Shown here piece after piece: positions 36,791-57,421 of a stretch of DNA of 64,000 nt. The first letter of the stretch is position 1, and each line of letters opens with the position of its first letter. The stretch covers positions 19,778,001 to 19,842,000 of the forward strand of contig NC_088861.1 in NCBI RefSeq assembly GCF_963853765.1, written 5' to 3'. The translations under genes and the position numbers were made by a program. The notes beneath the pieces were generated by a model. The model was not told the DNA's origin and made no database searches. It saw nothing but the letters and a program-made list of their open reading frames with translations. This DNA is from Magallana gigas (Eukaryota).

Positions 36791-39691
36791 GCTTATAATG
36801 TCGGCAAAGCATCAGAGAGCGATCAATTTTTGTAAGCAGCAACAAAAGCAAAAATATGTCTGTCTAGTAGGAAAAAGTTCAACAGCTTCTGCCTTGAATT
36901 TTGCAACAAGCGTTGTATTTTCAATCCCCATTTCTTCAATGCGCAGCAAAGTAGTTCATGGAAATTCATGCGCATTGTATGTGTCCAAAATGCATAGTCT
37001 TGTTTTTAAAACACTTTATCATTAAGAAAACTAAAAAAGATGCAAACACTTTTGACAAAACGTGGCTCTTTGTGTAAATATTTGGTAAAGCGGAAGCTTT
37101 GACTTTGACGCTGTTTAGTTTTTTGTTTACTTTGTGCTATTTATAGTAACATTGGCGATTTGCCTGCCTACAGCCAGGACTCTGCTTTCAGCAGAGCCCG
37201 CCTAAAAAGGGATAAATGACAAATTCATTAATTCTTACACTTATGAATTGGCAGTAAAAATTCACTCATTTCCAGAATAAAGTTTTGGTGAATAGTAAAG
37301 TAGTAGAACGCTCATACAAAAATAATTTTCAATTTCCAATTCAATGCACTTTTCTTTAAAAAGAGGACAGGTTTCAGACAAATATATTTTTAAAAATAAT
37401 TCCAAGCACTGCCACAATTTGCAAAATGCTAACAAAATCTTTAGATGTTGTTAAACACTAAACATGATTGGAACTGTGTTAACACTAAAATGTTTAACTT
37501 TGCAAACACTTAAATACTTGTGCACCTTGCAAACATTATAGAATGCTTGAGACTTTGTCAACACTAAAAAAACTTGATATATTGTAAACACTTAAAAATG
37601 TTCAAATTTGTAAACACTGAAAATACTTTGAACTTTGTATAAACTTCTTCATCAGTCTGTATAAACATACCGTGGAGCATCCAGCCTGGAGGGAGTTGTT
37701 GCCTCATACAGGAGACATTGTTGTAGCACAAGATGGCGGCATCAAGGGCGTTAACTCCTTCCCAGGGAAACTCAGCAGCATGAGCCTCTACTCCAGTGAA
37801 ATGCATAGTTACTCTATCAAATAAATTATATGATATCAAATCAATACTGTGTAATAGTTTATTCTCACTTCATTCTAATATATTGTATTTTTACTAGTTG
37901 AATCACACTTGATAACGTATTTACTCCGTTTCAAATTTGTTTGACAGTTGTGTTTGAAGATGTAAGACTGTAATACCGTATAAAACTTACCATTTTGTAT
38001 TGTTCAAAAATTAAATTTACCAAATTGCAATGAACATGATGAAATGGGTGAAAATTAAAGTGAGAGAAAAGTTTCTCAAATAGAGTACTTATAATTACAG
38101 ATATTACATACCCCCTCCCCCCTTTTGTTTTTAACTTCACGCAATTTTTTCATCTACATTAATCTGAATTTGACAGTTCATGCACTCACTCTGATATGGC
38201 AACATAATTTGGTCTGGATATGTAGTACTGAGAGGGATGGGCGGTCATTGCAAAATCGACATCTTTGAATACTTGTGCTTTGATGAAGGAAAGCTTCCCT
38301 CCCCTCTGTTCCTCGGCCGGGGTGCCCAGCAAACTGACCTACAGCAATGGAAAAGCAGATTAGAACAACAGGTTTTAAAAATGGCATAAAAGTCCATTGT
38401 CAGTTAACAAGAAATTGTGTAAGCTTAACAATGTCTTTTTGTTTGAATATTCTACTGTATACATGGTTATATTCTCCCCATGTTATTTTCACCCTTCTTC
38501 AATCTTCACTTGCAAACAGTGTTGCCCTGTCTTGAATTCGCCCAGACAGAGTTGTGTTTAAAAAGAGATAGTTTAAGCCAATGCAATTTGTCCAGTCTTT
38601 AATTTGCTCATAGACAAGGAGGGCGAAAGGGGCAAATATTTCCCTGTACACAGAATGTATACCAGTAGCATTGCTTTCAATATCAGGGAAAGTGTCAAAA
38701 AGATATGTATATATAGCAATCAATGATACTAATGCATTGTGCTAATGATAACAAATACTGAACTACTACAATAATGATATAATATAGCAGCAAAACATTG
38801 TCAGTGATCAAGCCCCTCCCCCCCCCCCCCCCAACCCCCCAATAATATATGATGAATTGTAAAGGAAACTACGCATGACTACAACTTGATACTCTGCTTG
38901 CACTTGATGCTTTACGTCAAGTATATGTAGTACACTTATAAATGTACTCACTCATGATAAAAAATGCTTCCTGTTCTATATTTATATTTTACAGAGTGTT
39001 TCATATCAAATAATCATATTTTGTTACATTTAATCCACACTTCAGCATGACATCATAGTTCTCCTTATCTTACTGCACTGCTCTCAATGACTACCTACCT
39101 TTCTGAAAAAAAAAATTGCTTTTCCAATGTCTTTCAAATAAAACATATACGGTACATATATTTATACATGTACATGATGCATGTATATATTGGCTCATAA
39201 TAAAAAAAAACCAGGAAAAATTTAGGCAAGACTGGCCTAGCAGTTTATATGGAAAATTTGGCAAGTAATCTGGGGATTGATATTGTTATAGCATGCACTA
39301 AATCAATTTTCCTCACCTTCCCGAAAGGTTGACCAGCTGCTTCAAAACATGCTTTAAGTGCAATCGCAATAGCCACACCGGACTCTACAATGAGATTGTG
39401 GCCACTAGCATGTCCTATTTCAGGCAGGGCATCATATTCCGTTAAAAGCGCCACATGTGGTCCCTTGGTTTTGTCACCACACACTGCTCTGAAGCCTGTG
39501 GGAAGAATAAACTTCCTGTCCACCTGTGGAAACTTGTACTTATCCAAGATCTCAGTGACAGCGTCGTGAGCTTTGAATTCCTCGTGAGCGAGCTCAGGAT
39601 TGGACCAAATGAAGAGACTCAATTTCGCTAGATCTTCTGCTGCTTGGTCTATTGCTTCACATGCTACTTCCTTCAGTTTCTCAATATCCAT
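35470..39691 (-). CDS. PM20D2: M20D amidohydrolase, PM20D2/ACY1L2-like, paralogue 1 (397 aa; HASGH instead of HACGH)
   Basis: join(39317-39691,38190-38338,37671-37813,36417-36571,35951-36194,35470-35597) = 1194 nt, open, GT-AG. Motifs [47 protein letters not shown]. Acceptor at 39720-39721 implies an upstream non-coding exon. Confidence 0.92.
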
Positions 39692-41115
39692 ATTAGTTTT
39701 CTATCAAAATGGAATTTCTCTGAAATTATAGAAATAAAAATACCATCCAAATTGGCTAGCTAATAAAAATCATTGGTCATAAATCTATTATATTATATAC
39801 TGGTTGAAATATTTAAGGTACATGTACTAGAAAGTTTTCAATGTTTTTAATAAAAATCAATTCTATAATTGTCATGGGTTATTGAAATATTGACTCTTTA
39901 AAGATTTAACAGGTATAAAAAAAGGCCCCATTTCCATGAATATATTACAGGAACTAGTCAATAGGCTTAAATTGACCTCAAAGTCGAATACGCATAGAGC
40001 TATAAGTCGAAGGCAGGTTTTCACAATTTATTGATTAAGTGATTTAAATTAACTATGAAATATAAACAATAATCAAATAAAATAAAGTCAAATAGAACAG
40101 GATAAAAATAATTATTTCTTAAAATGCCAAATGAGTCAGAATGAATTTAGCTCAAAGTTGCTTAGTCTTACTGACCGACTGGTGGACAATCAACTAGATA
40201 GTCAGTATGAGGACTTAAGCAACGTACATGAGGTACATGTAGTGGCCAAAAGTTTCTGACTGAATTGAATAAATTTCTATTAACTGTATTTATAATCTAA
40301 AAGATAATTAATGATAATAACTCAGATAGCTTAAAGAAAACTCAGAACAATTATATAGACTAATTGGGGATAATTAGTAAAGCAGACTGACCCTAGCTAA
40401 TTACTTGTCATTTGGCATGAGTAAACTCTTAAACACGAAATGACACACTATGACACATCATGTACATGTAACCTTTAAAAAGCACAAGGATCATGATCAA
40501 AATTTTTAATATATAAAGAATTAAACACTTACAATATCAGTGCAAAATAACAATCCCCATTTGAAAACTTTCGATGCTTTTAATATTGATTACATAGTGT
40601 AAATGGATATTGTATAACAATTTTAAAGACTTACAAATCCATTTTGAAAAACTCCCCCAATGTTCATTAAGTTCTTACAAAAATTCCTTGACATGATCAA
40701 AATACAAGGTCTATGAACTTTTTATGGCTCTATCATGCTTCTGTAATTGTATGCAGCAATGAATTGATTCATATTTTAGACTGATCAATAATATTTTTTT
40801 TGGTCAGTCAGACTTTGTGTGGTATATTGTTGTCCACAAATTTAAATAATTAAAACACTGCACCACAGGCCAGCAACCTCTGCTAATGACATGTATGTAT
40901 CAAGTTAGCTTCAATAGTCCAATCCACACTATGAAGAGTCAGCCAAATGTCAAAACGCCTTGTTGTTACCCTCATAATAATTATCACCTCCCCCACTCTG
41001 TGTAGTGGGAATACATGGTTACCCCCCCCCCCCCTTTTTGTTTTAACAATTTAATTAATTCAAAACAATATGTAATTGATTGTGCCAAGTTAACTTCATT
41101 CAGGTGTCTATTTAA

Positions 41116-41442
41116 GGTGGTATGGGACACATCCATGTTATGACGTACAGTATTTATCGAAATAGACAATAAAATCAAGTGTTATTTTATGATTATTTTT
41201 TTTCCCCAAAATTTTCACCTAACATTGTAGTGCATTGTGTAAGAAGCATATTGACAAATCTGTAAGTTATGAGTTTGAATGATCAATCCCATTTGAAAAT
41301 TTTTACCTTTCCAGGAATTTTTAAAACATATTTTTTTTTGTTATTGTAAAATTTGGAAATTTTAAAACTGGTGAGAGTATTTTGATTATAATGTACATTG
41401 TACTTATATCCACATTATTATTGACAAATATTTCATACCACC
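41116..41442. mobile_element. TTAA-flanked MITE family K2 (older copy)
   Basis: ttaa|ggtggtatg ... cataccacc|ttaa. Homologous to 16042-16348. Confidence 0.8.
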
Positions 41443-42126
41443 TTAACTAGCTGCCGAAATCACCCACAGTGCCGAACTTACTTTTCCTACAGGTGCCGAA
41501 ATTCACCTGGTGCCGAATTAACATGTACTCATCCATTTAACATTTTGAACACCAGTACAGGATAAAGGGAGATTTTTCTAACCTGCTTTTATCGCTATTT
41601 AGAATATTTATGTAATCAAAATATTAAAAATAATTTGATCATAACAATAACCATTTAAAAAACAGAACATAATGACTATTAAAATACCACATTACCTGTC
41701 ACTAGTCACTCCTCCGGCAGAACTAAAAGGTATGACTAAATGAAGAAGATTTCGGTGCTGGGAAAAGGGACACGACATGTGTGTATTTTTAGAGATACAA
41801 CATTGATGTGTTTTTATTGTAAAACTTTAAATGACAAAATTCACTATTTAAAATTAATCACATGTTCACGTAGACACTAGACAACTGATCTTAGAGAAAT
41901 TATGTATTTTTTTTTTTTTTTTAAATTTAAATTGGTTTCTGTATTACTATAACGTTAAGCTATACTGTATTATAATAATATACATGTATATGTTTGCATG
42001 AAAAAGGAGTAAAATACTTGTATTAATACATGATTACGTTTCTCGGTAAATGTTTATTTTGTGTTTGTTACATGTATATATTATAATCATAAATCACATA
42101 TATGTTTTCACGTTAAATAGACTGAC

Positions 42127-42476
42127 CCTATTTTCGTTTTTGTTTCCTCCTTTTCGATCGACTGCTTTGTAAAGATTGTTGTATGGAAAAAAACCCAGCC
42201 TTTTATTCCAAGTTACGTAATTGCTCGTGAGCTGTATGACCTTTAAACTCAATGATTTACAGTTTTTCTATAAATCGATAATCTTTCAATGCGAGTGTTC
42301 AATAGGTCATTCGCCGGGTTCTACTGAGGATGATCCGGAAAATTGCAGTTCAACCAAGCTGATTCGTCAAAGCGCCATAGCCCGGCGTGAACCCGTCTTC
42401 TAATATTATGTTATCGTCTGCTTGCTGTTCCAACTCTTGAAAGAAAGGATTTTCGGCAGGGCTTTTCGGGAAAAAT
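42127..42476. promoter_or_regulatory. Candidate bidirectional promoter / non-coding first exons of both PM20D2 paralogues
   Basis: CpG-rich patch between divergent genes, bounded by a minus-strand donor (G|GTCAGT after 42127) and a plus-strand donor (T|GTAGGT after 42476). Both first coding exons have acceptors just upstream of the ATG (39720-21, 43954-55). Confidence 0.5.
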
Positions 42477-42810
42477 GTAGGTTGTGTTTACAATTAATTT
42501 CTTCAAAGTTTTTTCATCATTAATTATTATCATAGGCCTAAATTGTTGAATGGGAAAATTTCCAAGATATCCCTTTTGACACATTGTCATTTTTCATCGT
42601 TTCAGAGGAAAAATCTAGGAAATTTTTCATACTTTTGAATAAACATCGTTTGAATCCTGAACATGCTGATGTATTATAGTATAATGAATATCGAGATATG
42701 AAGCAAAATGTGAATTGAGTAAATTGAGGATATCTTAGGACAGAGTATAGTACACACAGTACAGATGTACATGTATTTGATCAACCTCAAAATTTATTGT
42801 GGGAATTATA

Positions 42811-42965
42811 CTGGTGTGCATTGCGTGCAACCAGTTTTTGCCATGTACCATTTCTCGCCAGTGCATTGTTACATCATTTTATCAACACATTAAATCATAT
42901 GCGAAAAATGACGTAACAATGCACTGTAGAGAAATGGTACTTGGCGAGAACTGGTCGCACGCCAG
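42811..42965. mobile_element. Palindromic MITE (ctggcgtgcgaccagttctcgcc family)
   Basis: Inverted arms caaccagtttttgccatgtaccatttctc...gagaaatggtacttggcgagaactggtcgca. Second copy at 43484-43712. Confidence 0.75.
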
Positions 42966-42987
42966 AAGCGCAAGATAACAGTGATGT

Positions 42988-43229
42988 TAAAACCATTTTA
43001 ACAAGAGCTTGGACTTTGGGTAGTTGTGTCGAACGGCAATGTGATGCAGAACCGCTGGCTACTCAGCCATGTCTCTTTGAAATCAACAAGATTTGTCTCG
43101 CTTTTGAGCTCAGACTACACAATCGGTGCATATTTTGCTTGAAATCGCGTCATTTTTAACTTGTTTTGACGCCAAAAATAGATAGCTATGCCCTATTAAA
43201 AGTCCAAGGTCTTGTTAAAACTGGTTCTA
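42988..43229 (+). mobile_element. MITE, same family as 4130-4326
   Basis: aaccattttaacaagagcttggactttggg ... aaagtccaaggtcttgttaaaactggttcta. Confidence 0.8.
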
Positions 43230-43483
43230 TGTTAAAATATATATGGAAATCATTTGTTTATGTATTTCAACTCGATACGAAGGAATGGAAGCATGTAAAA
43301 AGTCACTTGAGTCTCACCAAAGCTTGTGCAATACTCAAAACGTGTCTTTAAACCTCTAGGAACTGTGAATTAAATGTGAGCGAGTTATTGTGGGATGCTG
43401 TCAAAAAAAAATTATTGATAAATCTGTAGGTTTAGCTCGTTTTTTTTTAGTGCGCTGGTTCTTTGAGCTGGCTTTGATCGCTA

Positions 43484-43712
43484 CTGGCATGCGACCAGTT
43501 CTCGCGGAGGACCATTTCTTGCCTGTGTATTGTAACATCATTTTTGGTATATAATTTTATGTGTTGATAAAATAATGTAACAATGCACTGGCGAGAAATG
43601 GTACTCGGCGAGAACTGGTCGCACGCCAGTTTAATTTTAATATGTGTTGATAAAATGACATAACAATGCGCTGGCAAAAAATGGTACTTGGCGAGAACTG
43701 ACCGCACGCCAG
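43484..43712. mobile_element. Palindromic MITE, TA-flanked, with duplicated right arm
   Basis: ta|ctggcatgcgaccagttctcgc ... gcgagaactgaccgcacgccag|ta. The right arm occurs twice. Confidence 0.8.
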
Positions 43713-43976
43713 TAGCATAAGACAGTAGACTAAATTTGAAATGCAGAGAACATTAACTAAGATGATAACATTAATGCTTAACCGAGGTCCTAGTCAAATA
43801 ATTAATACTGCAGCTAGTAGCTACCCACAAATTTACCTCCCAAAGTCTTTTAAGAACCTTTAGAAATCTACAAAAAACTGCCCCCCCCCCCCCCAAAAAA
43901 AAAAAACCAGTTTTCCCTATCATCATTTATCATATTTTCTATGTTTTGTTTTCAGTGAAGGGATCAATTTCCAAAA

Positions 43977-46392
43977 ATGGATGTACAGAAGTTACGTGAT
44001 GTAGCATGTGCAGAAATCGACAGAAACGCAGAAGATTTGGCGGCACTCAGCAATGTACTCTGGACCAACCCAGAGCTAGCCCTAGAGGAATTTATAGCAC
44101 ACGATGCACTAACAACATTCTTAGACAAGCAAGATTTTGATCAAGTAGAGAAAAACTTTGTGTTGCCAACAGGATTCCGCGCTGTATTTGGGGACAAAAG
44201 TAAGGGTCCCCATGTGGCTATTATGAGTGAATTTGATGCCCTACCTGACATAGGGCATGCTTGTGGACATAATCTCATTTCTGAGGTGGGCGTGGCAGCC
44301 GCTCTTGGGGTCAAGGCTGCACTCAAATCTGTGGATGTGCCATTTGGACAGGTAGGACTTGGAAAAGCTAGTAATACTAAACCAACTTTTATTTGTGAGC
44401 CAGAAATTTTCGTGAGGTTTGCAAGAGCCAAGTTCTTCTTTTGTAAGATTTTAATGATTTTAATTGTGAGAATTAGTCATCGCAAACCAATTTATCACCA
44501 CTTAAGTGCTAAATAATATCATCACAAATAAAAGTTGGTTTTAATTCAAGTTATGGTAAATCCTCAGTTTGATTACCTTTGATTTGAACTGATTTAAAAC
44601 CAGGTCATTTGTTTCATACATTTACTAAAACTTTAAACAAATGTAATGCTTTTACTTCCCAAAAGAACCATAGTAAGTATCCAAAACGTTCCTTCTTGCA
44701 TTATATTCTCATGTAATGGTATAGCTATACAGGTTTCGATGTTACATGTACCAAGATGTTACACTGAAAAAGTTCAAGAAATACAGTACAGCTCACGAGT
44801 ATCCCGACACCCACCGTGTAAAAAACACGGTGGAAAACGGTCTGTGTCGCACCGTGCACACGGTGTGACACCGTGTATGTGTATTGGAAAATTCAAGAAA
44901 AAGCACCGTGTCGCACCGTGGCCGCCTGTGTAACTCCGTGGCCACTGTGTTACTCCGTGGATATCGTTACCTGAGACGTTGATAGAAAAAGCGGATGTTT
45001 AGAAATAAAGAAATTATGGCTAAACAAGGGTTGAAACATATATATCCTTTTCACATTTAAAAAAAAAGAATGTCGATTAAGTTGCACGGACCCAGAAAAT
45101 TGTCGAGGCTGTCAACGTGAAGTTACTTTTTTGTGATCTGAAAACTCGACGTAAATGGGTACCTTTTAATTCATTTGTACTTAAATAAATTGAAATAAAT
45201 TCATTAAAAATATTTAATAATCAATAATATATAATCAAAATTCAAATCAATTTAATTCATCTTGTTTTTTTTTTCTAAACACACGTGATGTTGTAACTGA
45301 CGATCCCATTAAAATGTCGAGAGCTTAAACGTCTTATTTCTGTTATCTTTAAACACTTTCTGATTGATCAATTAATTTACAGCCTTACTTTAAACCAATT
45401 AAAAATGAGAAATGAAAACATTTCAGATCATGTTTTTCTAAAAACATGTGCTGTTGATGTGCTGTGGTAAATAACAACCCCATATTACCGGTGACTCGAA
45501 TAATTTGGACTTGGCAACTATTTATGTTGCAATGAATAAACAAAAAATCACTTTTATATTATAGATTAAGGATAAATACGTATTACATGAACAAACTCTT
45601 GTTAAATTATATTCAAGCATTGTACATGTATTAAAAATATACCCGCATTTCATAAAATAATTTTCAACTTTATTTCCGTATAGCTGGTAATGGCCTCGTG
45701 ATTTCACATGAAAAAAATCACTCGTGCGATGTACGGAAGCTGATCAGATACACAGCATTGTCTTTCATCTTGAGTTCTATACACAACAGGTGTTATTGTC
45801 TGTCTTGTTAGGTGTCATTGGAATTTACAACTAACTTTGTGTATATTTGGACGTCTGAACAGGTGTACTCGAGATGCCGTTATTCACACCTTTCCGCGAA
45901 CACCTGTTTGGTAACTCATCACAACCCGTCGTGTGTATGGTCTGAATATATCTTACTTCTATTTTGTTAGTTCAATGATTTTTCCTAATCTCTAACAAAC
46001 AAACAAAATTGTCTGTAGATATGTACACAAACAACTCCACGTAAGACTATCGGCGCGTGGATCCGGGGAACAATTCAGCAACTCTATAAATGCGGGAATT
46101 TCAAAGTATTAACTTGCGATAAGAAATTATTTAATGGGTAAACATACATGTATGTACACAAAAAACCTGATTGATTAAAAAGATGAATGAGATAATACCG
46201 GTTACTTTTTGCAAGCATTTAGAACACACAACTTTATGGATGTGAAATAGCGTCGAAAAATCTTATTACATCGTGAACTTTACAAACTTTTAGTCATTGT
46301 GTTGAAATCGTTATTAAAACCATGGATCTAAAATAAATGAATTAAATTCATACAAATAGAACTCTGATAATTCTAAAATGATTGCACAAAAG

Positions 46393-46842: not shown

Positions 46843-49800
46843 ATGACGATCATTAAACAATCAAACAGTAATCATTGCAATACTGAGTAAACTGTAGTTT
46901 CTTGGAACACAAATAATTTCTAAACTCAAGTTGCTATAAAGATGAAATAAAAAAATATCAAGTACCGATCCACCGATTCTTAGCGCTATGAATATGTACC
47001 GTGCGGTACTACATGGACAAGTACATCACACATATGTATAAAAGAAAGAAAATCTGAAAATATATTCCATATAAAGCTGTATAATTAATATTACTTAGAG
47101 AAAGTACATTTGTTTTCGATTTGTTATCGTTGAATAGTGAGAAAAGATCACAGTTATGGTTCTATGCACTATTGAAACTGCCAAACTACAGTAACTACAA
47201 TTACTATACTACGTTTAAAAACGGACTGAAACAAAAACTTATGAAACCGTTTATTTGAATGTTAAAAAGGAAAAGTAAGTGTTAGTGTTTTAATTGATCA
47301 AACATTTATGTGGGCGATATCGATTTTTAATATCAACTAAAATCAACCGTAACAATCACATACGTCTGAAAATTGCGTGCCTAAAAATTTTATTTATTTC
47401 TATTTCTTTGTTTTTTTCTTTAATGCTCTTACGTACATCAATAAATATTTCATTCTTTATAAGTTTTATTCCTAAATCCTCCTTTTTTCACAGGTAAATA
47501 CCGCGTGTTACACCGTGTTACTGTCAGTGTTGCATCGCGTTGCACCGTGTCGCACCGTGTTTTTTCTCGTTCCGTGGCCGTAACAGAGAACAATAGATCA
47601 AAGGTACCGACACTTCCACGCTCAGCGTGGACTTTCAAACACGGTGGTCGGTGTTTTTGTCGGGATACTCGTGAGCTGTACTGTATTGTCATAACGCCTT
47701 GTGTTAGGATTTAGGCATGTCTGTCTTAGTACCGGTACTTCATTGCTCCCTTATATATGTGTGTGAGCTTGTCAATGTGAAGAATTTTTTTTAGGTTGGA
47801 GAATGTTACCATGCTTACCGTCTTGCCACGCACTTTCACACCATACTGAGACTTCAGATCTAGCCCCATGCAACGTTTTCCTTTTTCCAAAACTCAAAAA
47901 ATTCCTATTTCAGAAGGTCTTTGTTATTTTGTGTCTCAGAGGTTTACCTAATCAGTGTACTGTGACAAATTTCAGAAATGGATTCAGAGATTAAAATTAT
48001 GTTTATTAATAAGCTGCAGAGAATTCTTTGAGTGGATGTAAGATAAATTCATTCCACTATTTGAGTCAAATGCTGGAATTGAAATATCATGGAATACCCA
48101 TTATATATCGAACAACCTCTTATACGATAGTATACAGGGTATATAACGTGACGTTGTTATAAACAAACAGCTTAATTATTGAGATCACTGGTCTTCCTCT
48201 CTCATTTCCTCTCTCTCTCTCTTTCTTTTTTTGTCTCCTTTTTGGTGATAGAAATTTTTTTGTTTGTGTAGGTGAGTTTACTGGGGACCCCAGCAGAGGA
48301 GGAGCACGGGGGAAAGATTGACTTCATCAAAGCGGGCGTGTTCAAGGATGTGGATGCTGCCATGATGGCCCACCCTGCCCAGTATGAGGTGCTCCGACCA
48401 AACTATGTGGCCATCTCCGAGTAAGACATCTTACAACTTCTAGCTTTGGTCAAATTGATTTGTTTTTAGGTCACCCGAGTCACTCAGGTGATCTATTGCT
48501 ATCCATTTTTGCCAGCGTTATATGTCGTTCATCAGTTTTAAATTTTTAAACATTTTTAGCTTCATCTTTTCTTTTGGCATATATATAGCATCTATGGGTG
48601 AAGGGAAGCAAAAATTTGGAAATTCATGACCCCTGACCCCTGGGGTGGGGCTAAAACCATCAAAATTAATGTGATCTTTAAAAGTCCTTCTCTTTACTCC
48701 TGGACATCAAGCAGTCAAACTGCTGGCTTTATTGTTTTAAGCATTGAGCTCTAATTGCCCCAGGGTCAGGGGTTCTTGTGCTAGCTAGGGTGGGGCTCTA
48801 ATGATTATGTAGTAAAAATGCATTAACTCTTTGAAAATAATCTCCTTTGCTCCTGAATATTAAGCAGATGAACTACAAGTACATAGTTATGATGAAGAAG
48901 GGTGCCTCTTCCAAAATAGTGAATTTCATGGGCCCTGGGTCAGGGGTTCTAGTGTTATTGTTTTGTTAATGCACTAAATGCATGTAATAAAAAATAAAAA
49001 TATTGTCTTGAAAAATTGTGCAAACACCAGAATCCCTGATCCAGAGGCCATTAAAATCAAAACTTCAGAAGAGGCCTCTTCTAAAGTTGAGATTTTAATT
49101 GCCTCTAGATCAGGGATTTTGGTGTTTGCACAATTTTTCAAGACGAGATTTTTATTTTTCATTAATATCCACTGCACTATAAGGCTAAGAGAATTTCATT
49201 AACCTTGTAATAATGATAAGCAGCATCGAAATGTTTTCGCTGACTCTGAAAAGTGTTACACACCAGGAACCTCTATGTCAGGGTTGTCTCTAAGACCCGG
49301 GAGGCGGGGAATTCCCCCCCTATAATGCCTTAATTACCCGGCTTTTATTATAATTCCGGAATTCCCCCCCTATAATGCCTTAATTACCCGGCTTTTATTG
49401 CATTTCAAACACAATGTACATTGGAGCTATAAGCAAGACCCCCAGACCTCCCTGCTACTTTTTTATTTCCTCCTTCTACTTCAATTTTTAGACACAACCC
49501 TGCTATGTACTGGTCTTGGGCATAATGCAGAAATTAAAATCAAGTTTTTTTTTTAGAAAAAAAACTTGTTTTTGGGTGCTGTTCTTGCAGATAAAAGTAA
49601 ACAAATGCATATGCAACCATGTTCATTATATATATATACATGTACCAGTAGGTAAGTTATTGTAGAAGGAATGTAGTAAGCACTTTCCCATTACAGTTCA
49701 TTGAAAAGCAAAAAAGGATTGCAATTGATTCACAGAGGAGGTACTCCAATGAATTCGGAGTTAGATACATGCATCTTGTATCATATTATACTGCATCATT

Positions 49801-52800
49801 AGTTTTTTTAAACAGAAACAAGCACCCTGTGGTTTAAACCTACTGTAGTATGAAAAAATTCAAGTCGGAATATATCTTATTATGTTGATTAATACTGTAG
49901 GAGTGCAGGAAAATATGGTATTATAATAATTGTTATTGATGCTAATGTTGAGGATGTTTAATATTCCATGGTGACATTGTTAAAAAAAGTTATCCCCCTT
50001 TACAGAATCATCATTGACTTCATAGGTGTAGAGGCTCATGCGGCTGAGTTTCCCTGGGAAGGAGTTAATGCCCTTGATGCGGCCATCTTGTGCTACAACA
50101 ATGTCTCCTGTATGAGGCAGCAGCTTGATCCGGGCTGGATGATTCATGGTACAGTGTATGATGCCTTTATTCTTCATCCCTAATGCATACTTTGAATTAG
50201 TTACTGTTCAACCATGTGGCATACATATATTCAGATGTTTTCATCTCAGAATGTAAAAACAGGTAATGGTGATAGCATGATATTCTATATGAGGTTGTTT
50301 TTTTATGTTTGGTATTTCTGATTAGTCATTTAACTGTGTTTATGTTGAGCAGGCATTGTGACTGACGGAGGAGCCAGGCCTAACATCATCCCCCGGCGGG
50401 CCTCGCTGGAGTACTACATCCGCACACCCAAAAACCGCGACCTCAAGAAGCTAGAGAGGAAACTCAGAAACTGTATTCAGGGGGCTGCACTAGCCACTAA
50501 CTGTGAGGTACGTAATATATGGACAGGTAAATTATGCAGTAACGAATTGTGAGGTACATAATATTTTTACAGGTAAAGTATACAAATATGCTGGTAACTG
50601 TGAGATATGTAATATTTGGAAAGGTGGAGTATACAAATAATGAACTGTGAGGTTTGTAATATATGGACCGGTAAAGTAAGTATACAAAAAACAAACTATG
50701 GGGTATATACATGGACAGGTAAAGTTTACAAATCAAGGAGGTAGAAACATGTATAGTGACAGGATATAAGATGATGCTTGTAAATTTCTTACTTAGAATG
50801 GCAAAGTCAACTGTGTACAAGTACTATTACTGGCAAACTCAATCTTACCGCATGCATATACATGTACCATTATGATGAAATGAAGGTATTTGATTTTAAT
50901 GAAAAGGCAGAATTTTTTTTAGCTTGAGGGAATTGCAAGCTGATAATTATTCATGAGATGTTTTAAATTTGTCTTGCATGTAGATGTAAATTTCAATACT
51001 GGTACCATTTAAAATGATTTATTAAATTGCCTTAAACATTTGATAGTTTATAGGAATTCAAAAATGGCTTTTCCCAATATAGGCTGGTAAATCCCTGCAC
51101 ACAGTTTATTATTGAGGATTATAAAGAATAAAATGCTGTACATTGCTAAACATTGTAACTGAAATCAATGGTAGCATAGCTAGCGCAATCACACAGTTAT
51201 TTACTTTCGCGTTTTACAGGTGCAGGTCAAAGTGAGGTCATCGTTCCTGAACCTGCTGTCCAACGAGACGATGATCAAGAAGTACGAGGAGTACACCACA
51301 CAGCTGGGGACGGAGGTGGACACGGACGAGACGCACCAGGCCCTGGGGGGTGGATCCACAGATATGGGGAACGTGTCGTACGAGGTCCCCAGCATTCACC
51401 CAGACTTTGCCATCGGATCTGATTGTAACACACACACCAAAGAGTTTACACCAGCTGCAGGTAATACGGGATGTTAAGAATATACTTTGTTTTGGGTTTA
51501 CCTGCTTTCGTATCTCTTAACTTTTATTTCAGTTTCTCTGTCTTCTATGCTCCCCATCCCTTTGAATTAAAGGGTCATATTGTTTAGAACTTGTCAGTTG
51601 GTCAGAATATCTTTTGGTTTGTTGCCTTAGTGTTGCTAAAGCTATATCTGGAGAACCTTTGCTTAATAGACATGATACAAGGTAATCTTGAACTTCATAG
51701 GAGATGATCCCTATTGATTTTTTATATAGGACACTAAAGAAATATACCAAAAAAAAGTGCTCTGGAAATTGGCAGGTCTGTCTTTATACTGTGGTTTCAT
51801 CAATATTCGTTGAATACTGATTTTCGTGGGTTTTGCTGTTAACTTTATCCACAATAATAAATGTTCAATGAAGTGTAATTTCCACTAGCATTTTGTATTG
51901 ATAGGATTATTGGCCATGAATTAACGTATCCTTAAAACTGTGATTTTCATTAAATCCACAAAAATTGATACCCATGAATATTAATGAAACTACAGTATGT
52001 TGAGAATATGGCATACATGACACTTGGTACTCTTAGACCCCTTAAATAAGGATCTGATGACTCCTCTAAATTGTTACTCAAAATAAAAGCAAAGTTTTAG
52101 TCAATCCAGAATTTTACAGTTCAGTTAATCAGTTTTACATGTACCTACATGGGTTGCTACTGATGTAAAAAGTTTACAGAATGTAGTCATTGGTGCATTG
52201 TTTTTAGTATTGGTTGTAATTATTGGTGTTGTATTTGGTCAAGGTAGAATTTATTGGTGCGTTGTATTAAGTTTGATCTAGCTAGGTTGTAATCATTGAT
52301 GTGTTGCATTTTTTGTAAGGTATAAATATTAGAATGCTGTATTTTGTCATGGCTGTAATTTTTGGCATTGTATTTGGTTTAAGATGTAGTTATTGGTGTG
52401 TTTGGCCTAATTCATAATTAATGGTGTTGTATTTAGTCTTACTTATATTACTTGTCATTGATGAATCGATCGACCAATCTACAATTCACGAAGTTACGTT
52501 TACGTTCCTGTGGCTGCCATCTTTGGGAGGGAAAAGCCGTAGGTTTCTCACAGATACTGTAGCATTTGTGGGTTAGAGGTTTTCATCTTTCAAATGTCAT
52601 TTAACATTAAAAATCTGTGTCTGTTGTGTGTTTTGATTGTTTGGTAAGTTGTAACCATTGCTGGGTTTTATTTTGCAGAGGTTTTATTTTTTGGTGTGTA
52701 ATATTTGTATTATCATATAAAAATAAGATGTAATTGTTGTGGTCTATGTTGTAATTGTTGGTGCTTTTATTCTTTTCGGTAAAGGTTCAAAGGAGGCGCA

Positions 52801-52912
52801 GATCTACACACTACGAGCGGCCAAGTCACTGGCCATGCTGTGCATTGACATCATGACGGACAAAGACCTCCTTGATAAAATCAAGCAGGAGTTTGAAGAG
52901 GAGTCGCAGTGA
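43977..52912 (+). CDS. PM20D2: M20D amidohydrolase, PM20D2/ACY1L2-like, paralogue 2 (396 aa; canonical HACGH)
   Basis: join(43977-44351,48272-48420,50006-50148,50353-50507,51220-51460,52785-52912) = 1191 nt, open, GT-AG. Same intron positions as paralogue 1. Motifs [46 protein letters not shown]. Confidence 0.94.
44784..47683. mobile_element. 2.9-kb TA-flanked non-autonomous DNA transposon in PM20D2-2 intron 1
   Basis: Perfect 26-bp TIR: ta|cagtacagctcacgagtatcccgaca ... tgtcgggatactcgtgagctgtactg|ta. Subterminal caccgtg repeats at both ends; no transposase ORF. Confidence 0.88.
48463..48957 (+). mobile_element. Helentron/HINE-type element with Cg170-like satellite monomers (3' end lost)
   Basis: tttttaggtcacccgagtcactcaggtgatctattgcta start, then ~165-bp units with gaaattcatgacccc...gggtcaggggttct. 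The Cg170 resemblance is from memory of oyster repeats. Confidence 0.7.
48992..49157. repeat. 166-bp spacer-less palindrome
   Basis: Centre agaagagg|cctcttct at 49074/49075. Explains the mirror ORFs 48974-49177 and 48978-49202. Confidence 0.9.
49279..49502. mobile_element. CAGGG...CCCTG MITE (hAT-like ends) with 6-bp flanking repeat
   Basis: ctatgt|cagggttgtctctaa ... ttagacacaaccctg|ctatgt. Internal ~48-bp tandem duplication. Confidence 0.8.
50498..50740 (+). repeat. ~45-bp minisatellite derived from the exon 4/intron 4 junction of PM20D2-2
   Basis: About 5 units of aactgtgag|gtacgtaatatatggacag|gtaaagtatacaaat. The first unit is the true donor (exon ends 50507). Confidence 0.85.
51787..51997. 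mobile_element. TA-flanked Tc1/mariner-type MITE in PM20D2-2 intron 5
   Basis: tactgtggtttcatcaatattc ... gaatattaatgaaactacagta (22 bp, 2 mismatches). Confidence 0.85.
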
Positions 52913-56434: not shown

Positions 56435-57421
56435 ATGACAAACCAAAGTGTTGTAGAGATTAACACTAGTGTGGAAATAAACACTACGAGTGTTCACGAT
56501 GGCAATCTCCTACACTGTGTCGAAGAGGAAAGTCTCATTTTGATCATGGCGCTGGTGATTTGGGTGTTAGGGGTAATAGGAAACACTGTGACCTTCTTCA
56601 AAATCGTCCTCAACAAACGGCTACGGCGCCCCGTGTCTGTCTCCATAGCCTGCCTGACCGTCGCAGACTTCTGCAGTCTGTGTATGCAGTTTATACGGAT
56701 ACCTATATCCCAATGCTTTTTTCTCACAGGTATCGGCGTCAAAATGATTGTCCTTGACATCACGGCGGTTGCCATCCATTCTTCAACCATGCACATTGTT
56801 ATTCTCGCTGCCATTCGATATTGTCTGATCGTGTACCCATTCCATACAAAATGGCGCCTCACTTCCGGGAAAGTCATAGCAAGTTCCGGTGTTTCCTGGG
56901 CCATTAGCGTCTGTCTGGGAATATCTTACGGAATATATAACCGGAAATACTACAACAAGACAATAGACAAACAAACCGACGCCATTGTCCAGCTTTTGAT
57001 TGGTTTATACGTTCTGTTGGTTCCGGTGACGTTTTTTGTCATTTTCTACATCAAAGAATTACGAACCATGAAAAAATCTCTTCTTCCAAAACGGACATCG
57101 AAATCAATCAAAAGCATCTCCAAGATGATATCGATAATCCTTATTCTCTACTGTGTGTTCATTTTGCCGTACGTGGTCGCCGATTTATGTCGCGTTCTGT
57201 ACTTCCATGATGTATTCGGCGACTCTGGAGATGCGACAGTGTATCAATCTGTAGTCATTCCGATTTACTCCGTGGCACAGATTACGATTTTATTAAACTA
57301 CACTGTGAATCCCTTCATCTACTTCCTGTTCTCAAGGATGATCTTCCGGGTCCGGTCTTGGCCTTTCCGGAGCAAACTATCATATCGACCGCGCAAGCGC
57401 CGGGAACAGAATGGCATTTAA
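56435..57421 (+). CDS. Intronless divergent class A (rhodopsin-like) GPCR, 328 aa
   Basis: First ATG gives MTNQS...NTS...NTT (N-glycosylation sequons). Seven hydrophobic segments with GVIGN (TM1), LTVAD (TM2), LAAIRY (TM3), SW (TM4), LVP (TM5), LPY (TM6), NPFIY (TM7). Confidence 0.92.
   Translation: MTNQSVVEINTSVEINTTSVHDGNLLHCVEEESLILIMALVIWVLGVIGNTVTFFKIVLNKRLRRPVSVSIACLTVADFCSLCMQFIRIPISQCFFLTGIGVKMIVLDITAVAIHSSTMHIVILAAIRYCLIVYPFHTKWRLTSGKVIASSGVSWAISVCLGISYGIYNRKYYNKTIDKQTDAIVQLLIGLYVLLVPVTFFVIFYIKELRTMKKSLLPKRTSKSIKSISKMISIILILYCVFILPYVVADLCRVLYFHDVFGDSGDATVYQSVVIPIYSVAQITILLNYTVNPFIYFLFSRMIFRVRSWPFRSKLSYRPRKRREQNGI

Follow-up and report, generated by a model that had tools for sequence, protein, structure and literature searches.

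A head-to-head pair of PM20D2-like genes in Magallana gigas, one of which carries serine at the position of the metal-bridging cysteine

Introduction

The hallmark separating M20D amidohydrolases from other M20 peptidases is a cysteine in the binuclear metal centre, which in CsAga of C. striatum (PDB 6SLF) is stated to bridge two co-catalytic zinc ions (review PMC11511702). Vertebrate PM20D2 is described as a repair dipeptidase that proofreads beta-alanyl-lysine, according to a passage of PMC13311154 that cites Veiga-da-Cunha 2014. Both points had been made, in agreement with these sources, in a sequence-only reading of the window analyzed here, a stretch of 64,000 nucleotides from Magallana gigas (assembly GCF_963853765.1, contig NC_088861.1, positions 19,778,001 to 19,842,000). 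In that reading, two head-to-head PM20D2 paralogues were described, of which one, P1 (minus strand), reads HASGH and the other, P2 (plus strand), reads HACGH. Here, the pair was compared with its relatives in oysters and in other phyla. P1 proved to be a genuine gene, expressed and maintained by selection, that carries an ancient, fixed swap of a single ligand, Cys to Ser96, together with a Met-to-Thr change close to His159 in the sequence. On balance, we lean towards P1 being a still-functional hydrolase with a remodelled, sulfur-free metal centre, the behavior of which would differ from that of P2.

The closest described systems have much in common with P1. Human PM20D2 (PDB 7YH4, 8ZEI, 8XZC and 8ZEL) displays the same Pfam architecture, PF01546 and PF07687, and the same motifs: GHAxGHN, GTPAEE, AHP, the lid motifs AHAA, PWEG and NALDA, GSTDxGNVS, and a C-terminal His. 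Residues 3-395 of P1 align with 7YH4 and 8XZC at E=1e-100. In comparison with the human protein, P1 has Ser for Cys and Thr for Met at position -2 from the AHP histidine, and both oyster copies are without its N-terminal extension of approximately 36 residues. HmrA of S. aureus (PDB 3RAM) aligns with P1 at E=2e-49, with the Glu-Glu pair and the Met-x-His-Pro element as common features. HmrA and CsAga are of the same subfamily as P1, but the cysteine is present in them (HACGH in HmrA). A weak match of P1 to the Abg-type structure 3IO1 (E=8e-9) was also obtained, and Sapep, which is PepV-like, was dropped as a relevant comparison. In the literature searched, no natural Ser variant of M20D enzymes is described, and no paper was found on PM20D2 structures or on oyster PM20D2. 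Both oyster genes are already annotated, each under the RefSeq name xaa-Arg dipeptidase, and neither a comment nor a publication that mentions the ligand swap was found.

Results

The Serine Codon and the P1 Gene

At the site of the bridging cysteine, AGT was read directly in P1 (39406-39404, within the minus-strand codons GGA CAT GCT AGT GGC CAC AAT, GHASGHN) and TGT in P2 (44262-44264, plus strand, GHACGHN), as had been reported. The P1 model, assembled from open frames and splice signals, consists of six exons with GT-AG at every junction and no stop. It encodes 397 aa, the open length given in the sequence-only reading, and profile search and cluster look-ups demonstrated that it is letter-for-letter identical to RefSeq XP_011438594.3. 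Its transcription is supported by Logan contigs of 1.2-3.4 kb that encode the uninterrupted 397-aa open reading frame (ORF). Near-identical counterparts of both P1 and P2 are present in C. angulata.

Confirmation of AGT in reads and in oyster orthologues had been proposed, and both sources yielded serine. Ser (IGHASGHN) is shared by every one of the 15 members listed in the 90% cluster of P1, the C. angulata RefSeq protein included. These members are distinct alleles from independent assemblies, many of them transcript-length contigs, and differ from one another at 14 further residues. The region 39200-44400 was also checked against four runs, each of a different study: two consist of DNA contigs, one of RNA contigs and one of raw poly(A) RNA reads. 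Among the variants listed for them there is no alternative letter at 39404-39406, while known polymorphisms near Ser96 did appear (T75A, L26H and three synonymous sites). At these two amino acid positions the reference animal carries the minority alleles of exon 1, L26 and T75, most alleles having H and A. It should be noted that the verdict of no error at Ser96 leans mainly on the allele set and less on the variant listing of the runs. AGT was also found at this codon in C. virginica and in a third oyster species.

Five PM20D2-like loci are present in the M. gigas genome: P1, P2, two further multi-exon, Cys-bearing genes on the same chromosome, and one processed copy of P1 on another chromosome (C3:28260366-28261500). 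The latter is intronless and contains many stops and frameshifts. All five splice junctions of P1 are reproduced in it, and at the motif it reads IRHPSCHNL, with the serine kept. Related fragments of P1 retro-copies occur in public assemblies (P0011, P0027, P0404, P0425 and others); these and similar clusters, intronless and frameshifted, were rejected as P1 orthologues. The P0002 cluster, with GYVSGYN for GHASGHN, was rejected as a divergent homologue. It consists of Logan contigs of 39317-39691 with systematic changes of A to V, P to F/L, H to Y and T to I, and represents bisulfite-converted reads of the same gene. Bisulfite-derived translations in a public protein collection are a trap for arguments based on motif decay.

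Active-Site Residues

Membership of the family is indicated by the profiles. P1 scored 29.9 bits for PF01546 (cut-off 24.6) and 36.7 bits for PF07687 (cut-off 21), P2 being similar, and TIGR01891 gave 196.4 bits for P1 and 197.6 bits for P2 against a cut-off of 153.75. P1 was said to have kept its other motif residues, and this holds: H98, E134, E135, H159 (AHP), H186, H335 and H347 (NTH) are all in place, and H98, E134/E135, H159 and H347 are kept in both gigas and virginica P1. The bridging Cys of H-x-C-G-H is present in P2 and is Ser96 in P1. In the 166 other full-length members of the family, which range from cnidarians to mammals, the motif column is Cys in every case (166/166). P1 is thus best classed as an M20D homologue with an atypical ligand set and not as a canonical member.

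The departures peculiar to P1 cluster round the metal site in the sequence: Cys96 to Ser, Ala102 to Val and Met157 to Thr, all three of which are also found in C. virginica P1. Met157 lies two residues before the ligand His159, is 100% conserved in the rest of the family and is Met in HmrA as well; judging from strand geometry alone, its side chain probably points towards the metal pocket. As read from the alignment, Cys96 to Ser and Met157 to Thr together strip both sulfur side chains from P1. The pteriomorph subfamily that includes P1 and P2 differs from the family at two lid positions (exon 3), with Ala184 replaced by Glu and Arg220 by Met, while the other oyster PM20D2 clade retains the family Arg220. 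Because of these two lid residues, the substrate of P1 and P2 may differ from that of vertebrate PM20D2.

Orthologues and Age of the Substitution

A search with exon 1 returned genomic exon fragments from other oysters, one of them 90% identical to P1 (ELGHASGHN). A second is 84% identical (EIGHASGHN), and the matching P2 exon in that species has Cys. The cluster of the second fragment includes a full-length C. virginica RefSeq protein, XP_078329106.1, of 397 aa and 86% identical to gigas P1, in which Ser96, Val102, Thr157, the Glu-Glu pair, AHP, the lid motifs, His335 and His347 are all kept. The C. virginica P1 gene (CM130312.1) has six exons of exactly the sizes seen in gigas, all GT-AG. 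At a distance of 5.5 kb upstream lies a Cys-bearing P2 orthologue, in head-to-head orientation. The adjacent paralogous pair has therefore been kept, with 4.3 kb between the ATGs in M. gigas and 5.5 kb in C. virginica. In the GSTDxGNVS motif of C. virginica P1, the Asn is replaced by Ser (GSVS). An apparent absence of P1 orthologues beyond gigas and angulata, obtained in a length-filtered search with full-length P1 as the query, was rejected as a clustering artefact; C. virginica P1 is missed there because its 90% cluster representative is a 154-aa exon fragment.

In all P1 orthologues the codon is AGT, one step from TGT. Since it is found in C. virginica and in the other oyster orthologue, the Cys-to-Ser change is older than the split between Pacific and Atlantic cupped oysters. 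The divergently transcribed pair of P1 and P2 goes back to a tandem inverted duplication that is specific to oysters and predates the Magallana-Crassostrea split, and a single T-to-A change on the P1 branch converted Cys (TGT) to Ser (AGT).

Selection, Rates and the Exon 3 Tract

In a maximum-likelihood tree over 48 proteins, P1 and P2 form a strongly supported oyster-only clade within a pteriomorph-bivalve subfamily, inside metazoan PM20D2. The stem lengths are symmetric (P1 0.23 vs P2 0.18+0.05). Relative-rate tests with four outgroups counted 27-32 P1-unique changes vs 24-29 P2-unique changes, with chi-square values of 0.07-0.86. Departures from family columns, P1 v P2, number 4 v 4 at columns at least 95% conserved, 9 v 6 at those at least 90% conserved and 24 v 22 at those at least 80% conserved. 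Selection on P1 had been suggested, with the ratio (omega) of non-synonymous (dN) to synonymous divergence (dS) as a check. Between gigas and virginica P1, dN is 0.086, dS 1.62 and omega 0.05 (396 codons), which corresponds to purifying selection. For exon 1, the comparison of gigas P1 with the third oyster species gave dN 0.049, dS 0.31 and omega 0.16, and that of gigas with virginica gave dN 0.099 for P1 and 0.101 for P2, dS being saturated for both. No acceleration or relaxation of P1 relative to P2 was therefore detected by relative-rate tests, omega or conserved-column departures. By the symmetric branch lengths and low chi-square values, P1 is constrained as tightly as P2, and it is under strong purifying selection.

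Between P1 and P2 of gigas, protein identity is 70%, dN is 0.22 and the proportion of synonymous differences (pS) is 0.73, which is saturated; pS reaches 0.86-0.88 in exon 4 windows, in line with the earlier statement that synonymous sites in this exon are largely saturated. The exception is a 96-nt tract of exon 3 (P1 37701-37796, P2 50023-50118) that encodes [32 protein letters not shown], where pS in gigas is 0.21 vs 0.77 elsewhere in the gene. Compared across four genes, P1 and P2 in both M. gigas and C. virginica, the tract displays only 4-7 nt differences and an identity of 93-96%. As the C. virginica genes share this similarity, gene conversion in gigas, taken by itself, is not a sufficient cause; the pattern points to recurrent gene conversion or to selection on the nucleotide sequence itself.

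Cysteine-Less Copies in Other Lineages

Within the top 150 cluster representatives for exon 1, a few real lineages are non-Cys at the motif position: Diadema (GHASGRN in two species; XP_071482794.1), Branchiostoma lanceolatum (GHAAGRN; CAH1242992.1), Saccoglossus kowalevskii (GHGSGRN) and two further eukaryote lineages (P0060, P0034). Like P1, the copies in Diadema, Branchiostoma and Saccoglossus are lineage-specific extra PM20D2 genes without the bridging Cys; their active sites, by contrast, are dead, whereas P1 has lost the Cys alone. Where sequence beyond exon 1 is available, the second His, one Glu of the Glu-Glu pair, the AHP histidine and usually the C-terminal His are gone in the Cys-less copies. 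Counted over eight tracked catalytic residues, one is lost in P1 and six in the Diadema copy, with Branchiostoma, Saccoglossus, P0060 and P0034 similar to Diadema; three to five residues additional to the Cys are lost in the sea urchin, amphioxus and acorn worm paralogues. Since these residues have been lost in Cys-less copies of other lineages, they appear free to change after catalysis is lost, and the Glu-Glu pair and the His ligands evidently decay once catalysis is abandoned.

P2 and the Surroundings of the Pair

P2 likewise has six GT-AG exons, and alternative acceptors 6 nt apart at exon 5 give products of 394 and 396 aa. The form with the upstream acceptor is RefSeq XP_011438592.3 (396 aa). 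The upstream member of these tandem acceptors (51220-51226) adds Val-Gln and is the one found in RefSeq and in most transcript contigs. A canonical AG acceptor lies directly before 43956, at the 5' splice of P2 (43955/43956).

The ATGs of P1 and P2 are 4,286 bp apart and face away from each other. Contig word depth in the spacer rises 10- to 4000-fold vs the flanks at 39896-40417, 41114-41287 and 42506-43723. Because the spacer is mostly repeats and P2 appears to have a separate 5'-UTR (untranslated region) exon, no compact shared or bidirectional promoter is evident, and the promoters look separate. Both genes are covered, at low depth, in one poly(A) RNA run. Its raw reads are stranded: coverage is approximately 3-4x for P1 exon 1, where first mates map to the plus strand, and approximately 1-2x for P2 exon 1, where they map to the minus strand. 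From this opposite mate orientation, it follows that both genes are transcribed, in opposite directions. The features of the pair are listed in Table 1. Downstream of P2, a single-exon ORF at 56435-57418 (plus strand) encodes a rhodopsin-family G protein-coupled receptor (Pfam 7tm_1, E=5e-17). A run of 130 N at 32645-32774 represents an assembly gap or a masked stretch.

Table 1. Positions of P1, P2 and associated features in the window
Feature	Position	Strand	Remarks
P1 exon 1	39317..39691	-	codons 1-125; ATG at 39691; GHASGHN; stranded poly(A) RNA reads ~3-4x
Ser96 codon AGT	39404..39406	-	plus strand ACT; site of the metal-bridging Cys in M20D enzymes
His98 ligand codon and P1-specific Val102	39386..39400	-	His98 39398-39400; Val102 39386-39388, where the family has Ala in 99%
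P1 exon 2	38190..38338	-	Glu134/Glu135 38309-38314; Thr157 38243-38245; His159 ligand 38237-38239
P1 exon 3	37671..37813	-	lid/dimerisation domain; His186; holds the 96-nt tract of low synonymous divergence
P1 exon 4	36417..36571	-	M20_dimer domain; GGARPNIIP
P1 exon 5	35951..36194	-	[10 protein letters not shown]; His335; His347 at 35976-35978
P1 exon 6	35470..35597	-	final exon; stop TGA 35472-35470
Intergenic region P1-P2	39896..43723	.	mostly high-copy repeats
Probable P2 5'-UTR exon	42127..42475	+	donor position approximate; an RNA-library contig joins 42127-42475 to 43956-44290
P2 exon 1	43977..44351	+	GHACGHN; Cys TGT 44262-44264; stranded reads opposite in orientation to P1
P2 exon 2	48272..48420	+	open frame and splice signals
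P2 exon 3	50006..50148	+	open frame and splice signals
P2 exon 4	50353..50507	+	open frame and splice signals
P2 exon 5	51220..51460 (or 51226-51460)	+	upstream acceptor gives the RefSeq 396 aa; downstream AG gives 394 aa
P2 exon 6	52785..52912	+	stop codon included

Discussion

The sequence-only reading had offered three roles for P1: a pseudoenzyme, a regulatory or heterodimer partner, or an enzyme with altered metal or substrate preference. The choice among them is one that we infer from sequence comparison. The comparative evidence favors the last part of that list, in the form of an altered but used metal site, and disfavors a plain pseudoenzyme, because the dead Cys-less paralogues of other lineages have lost the Glu-Glu pair and His ligands and P1 has kept them all. 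Since the other ligands, the general-base Glu and the lid motifs are kept under strong purifying selection, P1 most likely still binds metal and substrate. Its metal centre would be mononuclear, or bridged by water or by Ser, and its preference would possibly be for harder metals (Mn2+ or Co2+, for example). In metal, redox or substrate behavior, P1 would then be unlike its Cys-bearing neighbor. All other catalytic residues are kept in P1 across a gigas-virginica dS of ~1.6, a distance over which unconstrained residues would be expected to have largely turned over.

Several points weigh against a working hydrolase. The lost Cys is the one invariant in the 166 other full-length members, and in M20D enzymes it bridges both metals (PMC11511702). 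A Ser hydroxyl would be a poor bridging ligand, so that activity could be abolished in P1, and the kept residues could serve the binding of metal or substrate without turnover. Nothing was found in the literature on Cys-to-Ser mutants of M20D enzymes, and full-length P1 orthologues are available from two genera only. A ligand change of a related kind is known from the metallo-beta-lactamases, in which Cys221 is a ligand in subclass B1 and Ser221 is a non-ligand in subclass B3, both forms being active with a binuclear zinc site. Their fold is unrelated to that of P1, and in B3 another His replaces the ligand; no such compensating ligand was identified in P1.

One other explanation is that AGT results from a mistake in sequencing or assembly, or that the reference animal happens to carry a rare allele. 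The minority alleles L26 and T75 in exon 1 are all that could be cited in its favor, and they give it no direct support. It is refuted by the serine of 15 distinct alleles, the C. angulata RefSeq protein among them, by the lack of a variant at the codon among those listed for four runs from four studies, and by AGT in two other species, with Ser kept in the retro-copies as well. It could also be supposed that P1 is a recently disabled gene drifting to a pseudogene, its frame open by chance, since a key ligand is gone and a processed P1 pseudogene lies elsewhere in the genome. That copy, however, is full of stops and frameshifts, in contrast with a P1 that is transcribed and spliced, evolves at the rate of P2, has an omega of 0.05 at a dS of 1.62 between genera, and possesses an intact ORF with the same exon structure in C. 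virginica. Decay is consequently very improbable and is effectively excluded by the orthologue comparison.

A more serious competitor, to which we would nevertheless give a smaller chance than to a working hydrolase, is that P1 is a dead pseudoenzyme with a non-catalytic role, either as a heterodimer partner or regulator of P2 through the M20 dimerisation domain, or as a protein that binds substrate or metal. Loss of the invariant bridging ligand would be consistent with such a role, as would the divergent pair kept side by side in C. virginica, the expression of both genes in the same poly(A) RNA run, and a lid/dimerisation exon that is near-identical between P1 and P2, synonymous sites included. 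Cys-less PM20D2 pseudoenzymes have, moreover, arisen repeatedly in other phyla. The E. coli p-aminobenzoyl-glutamate hydrolase AbgA/AbgB, encoded by adjacent paralogous M20D genes whose products act together, provides a precedent for partnership, although it is a bacterial operon, unlike the oyster pair. On the other side, the established dead paralogues lost three to five more catalytic residues and P1 lost none across a dS of ~1.6, it displays neither a faster rate nor an excess of departures at conserved sites, and the repeat-filled spacer and separate 5' exons leave no evident shared promoter.

If P1 is instead a functional hydrolase, a bolder extension can be considered, which at present seems rather unlikely. 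In this view, P1 would be the first M20D hydrolase found in nature to dispense with the bridging thiolate, and its pocket without sulfur would have persisted for tens of millions of years. Such a pocket could allow P1 to use a different metal, or to keep working in the presence of thiophilic metals (Cu, Cd, Zn overload) or oxidants that would poison a Cys enzyme. Practical stakes are modest because neither gene is yet tied to a phenotype or pathway. For annotation, loss of the Cys alone does not denote a dead enzyme, whereas combined loss of the Cys, the Glu-Glu pair and the His ligands does. P1 represents a natural experiment on how much of the binuclear metal site an amidohydrolase needs, in which P2, 70% identical and adjacent, is the built-in control. 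Were the extension true, the sulfur-free P1 would represent an adaptation that fits intertidal oysters as metal hyperaccumulators, and P2 would have been retained as the canonical copy.

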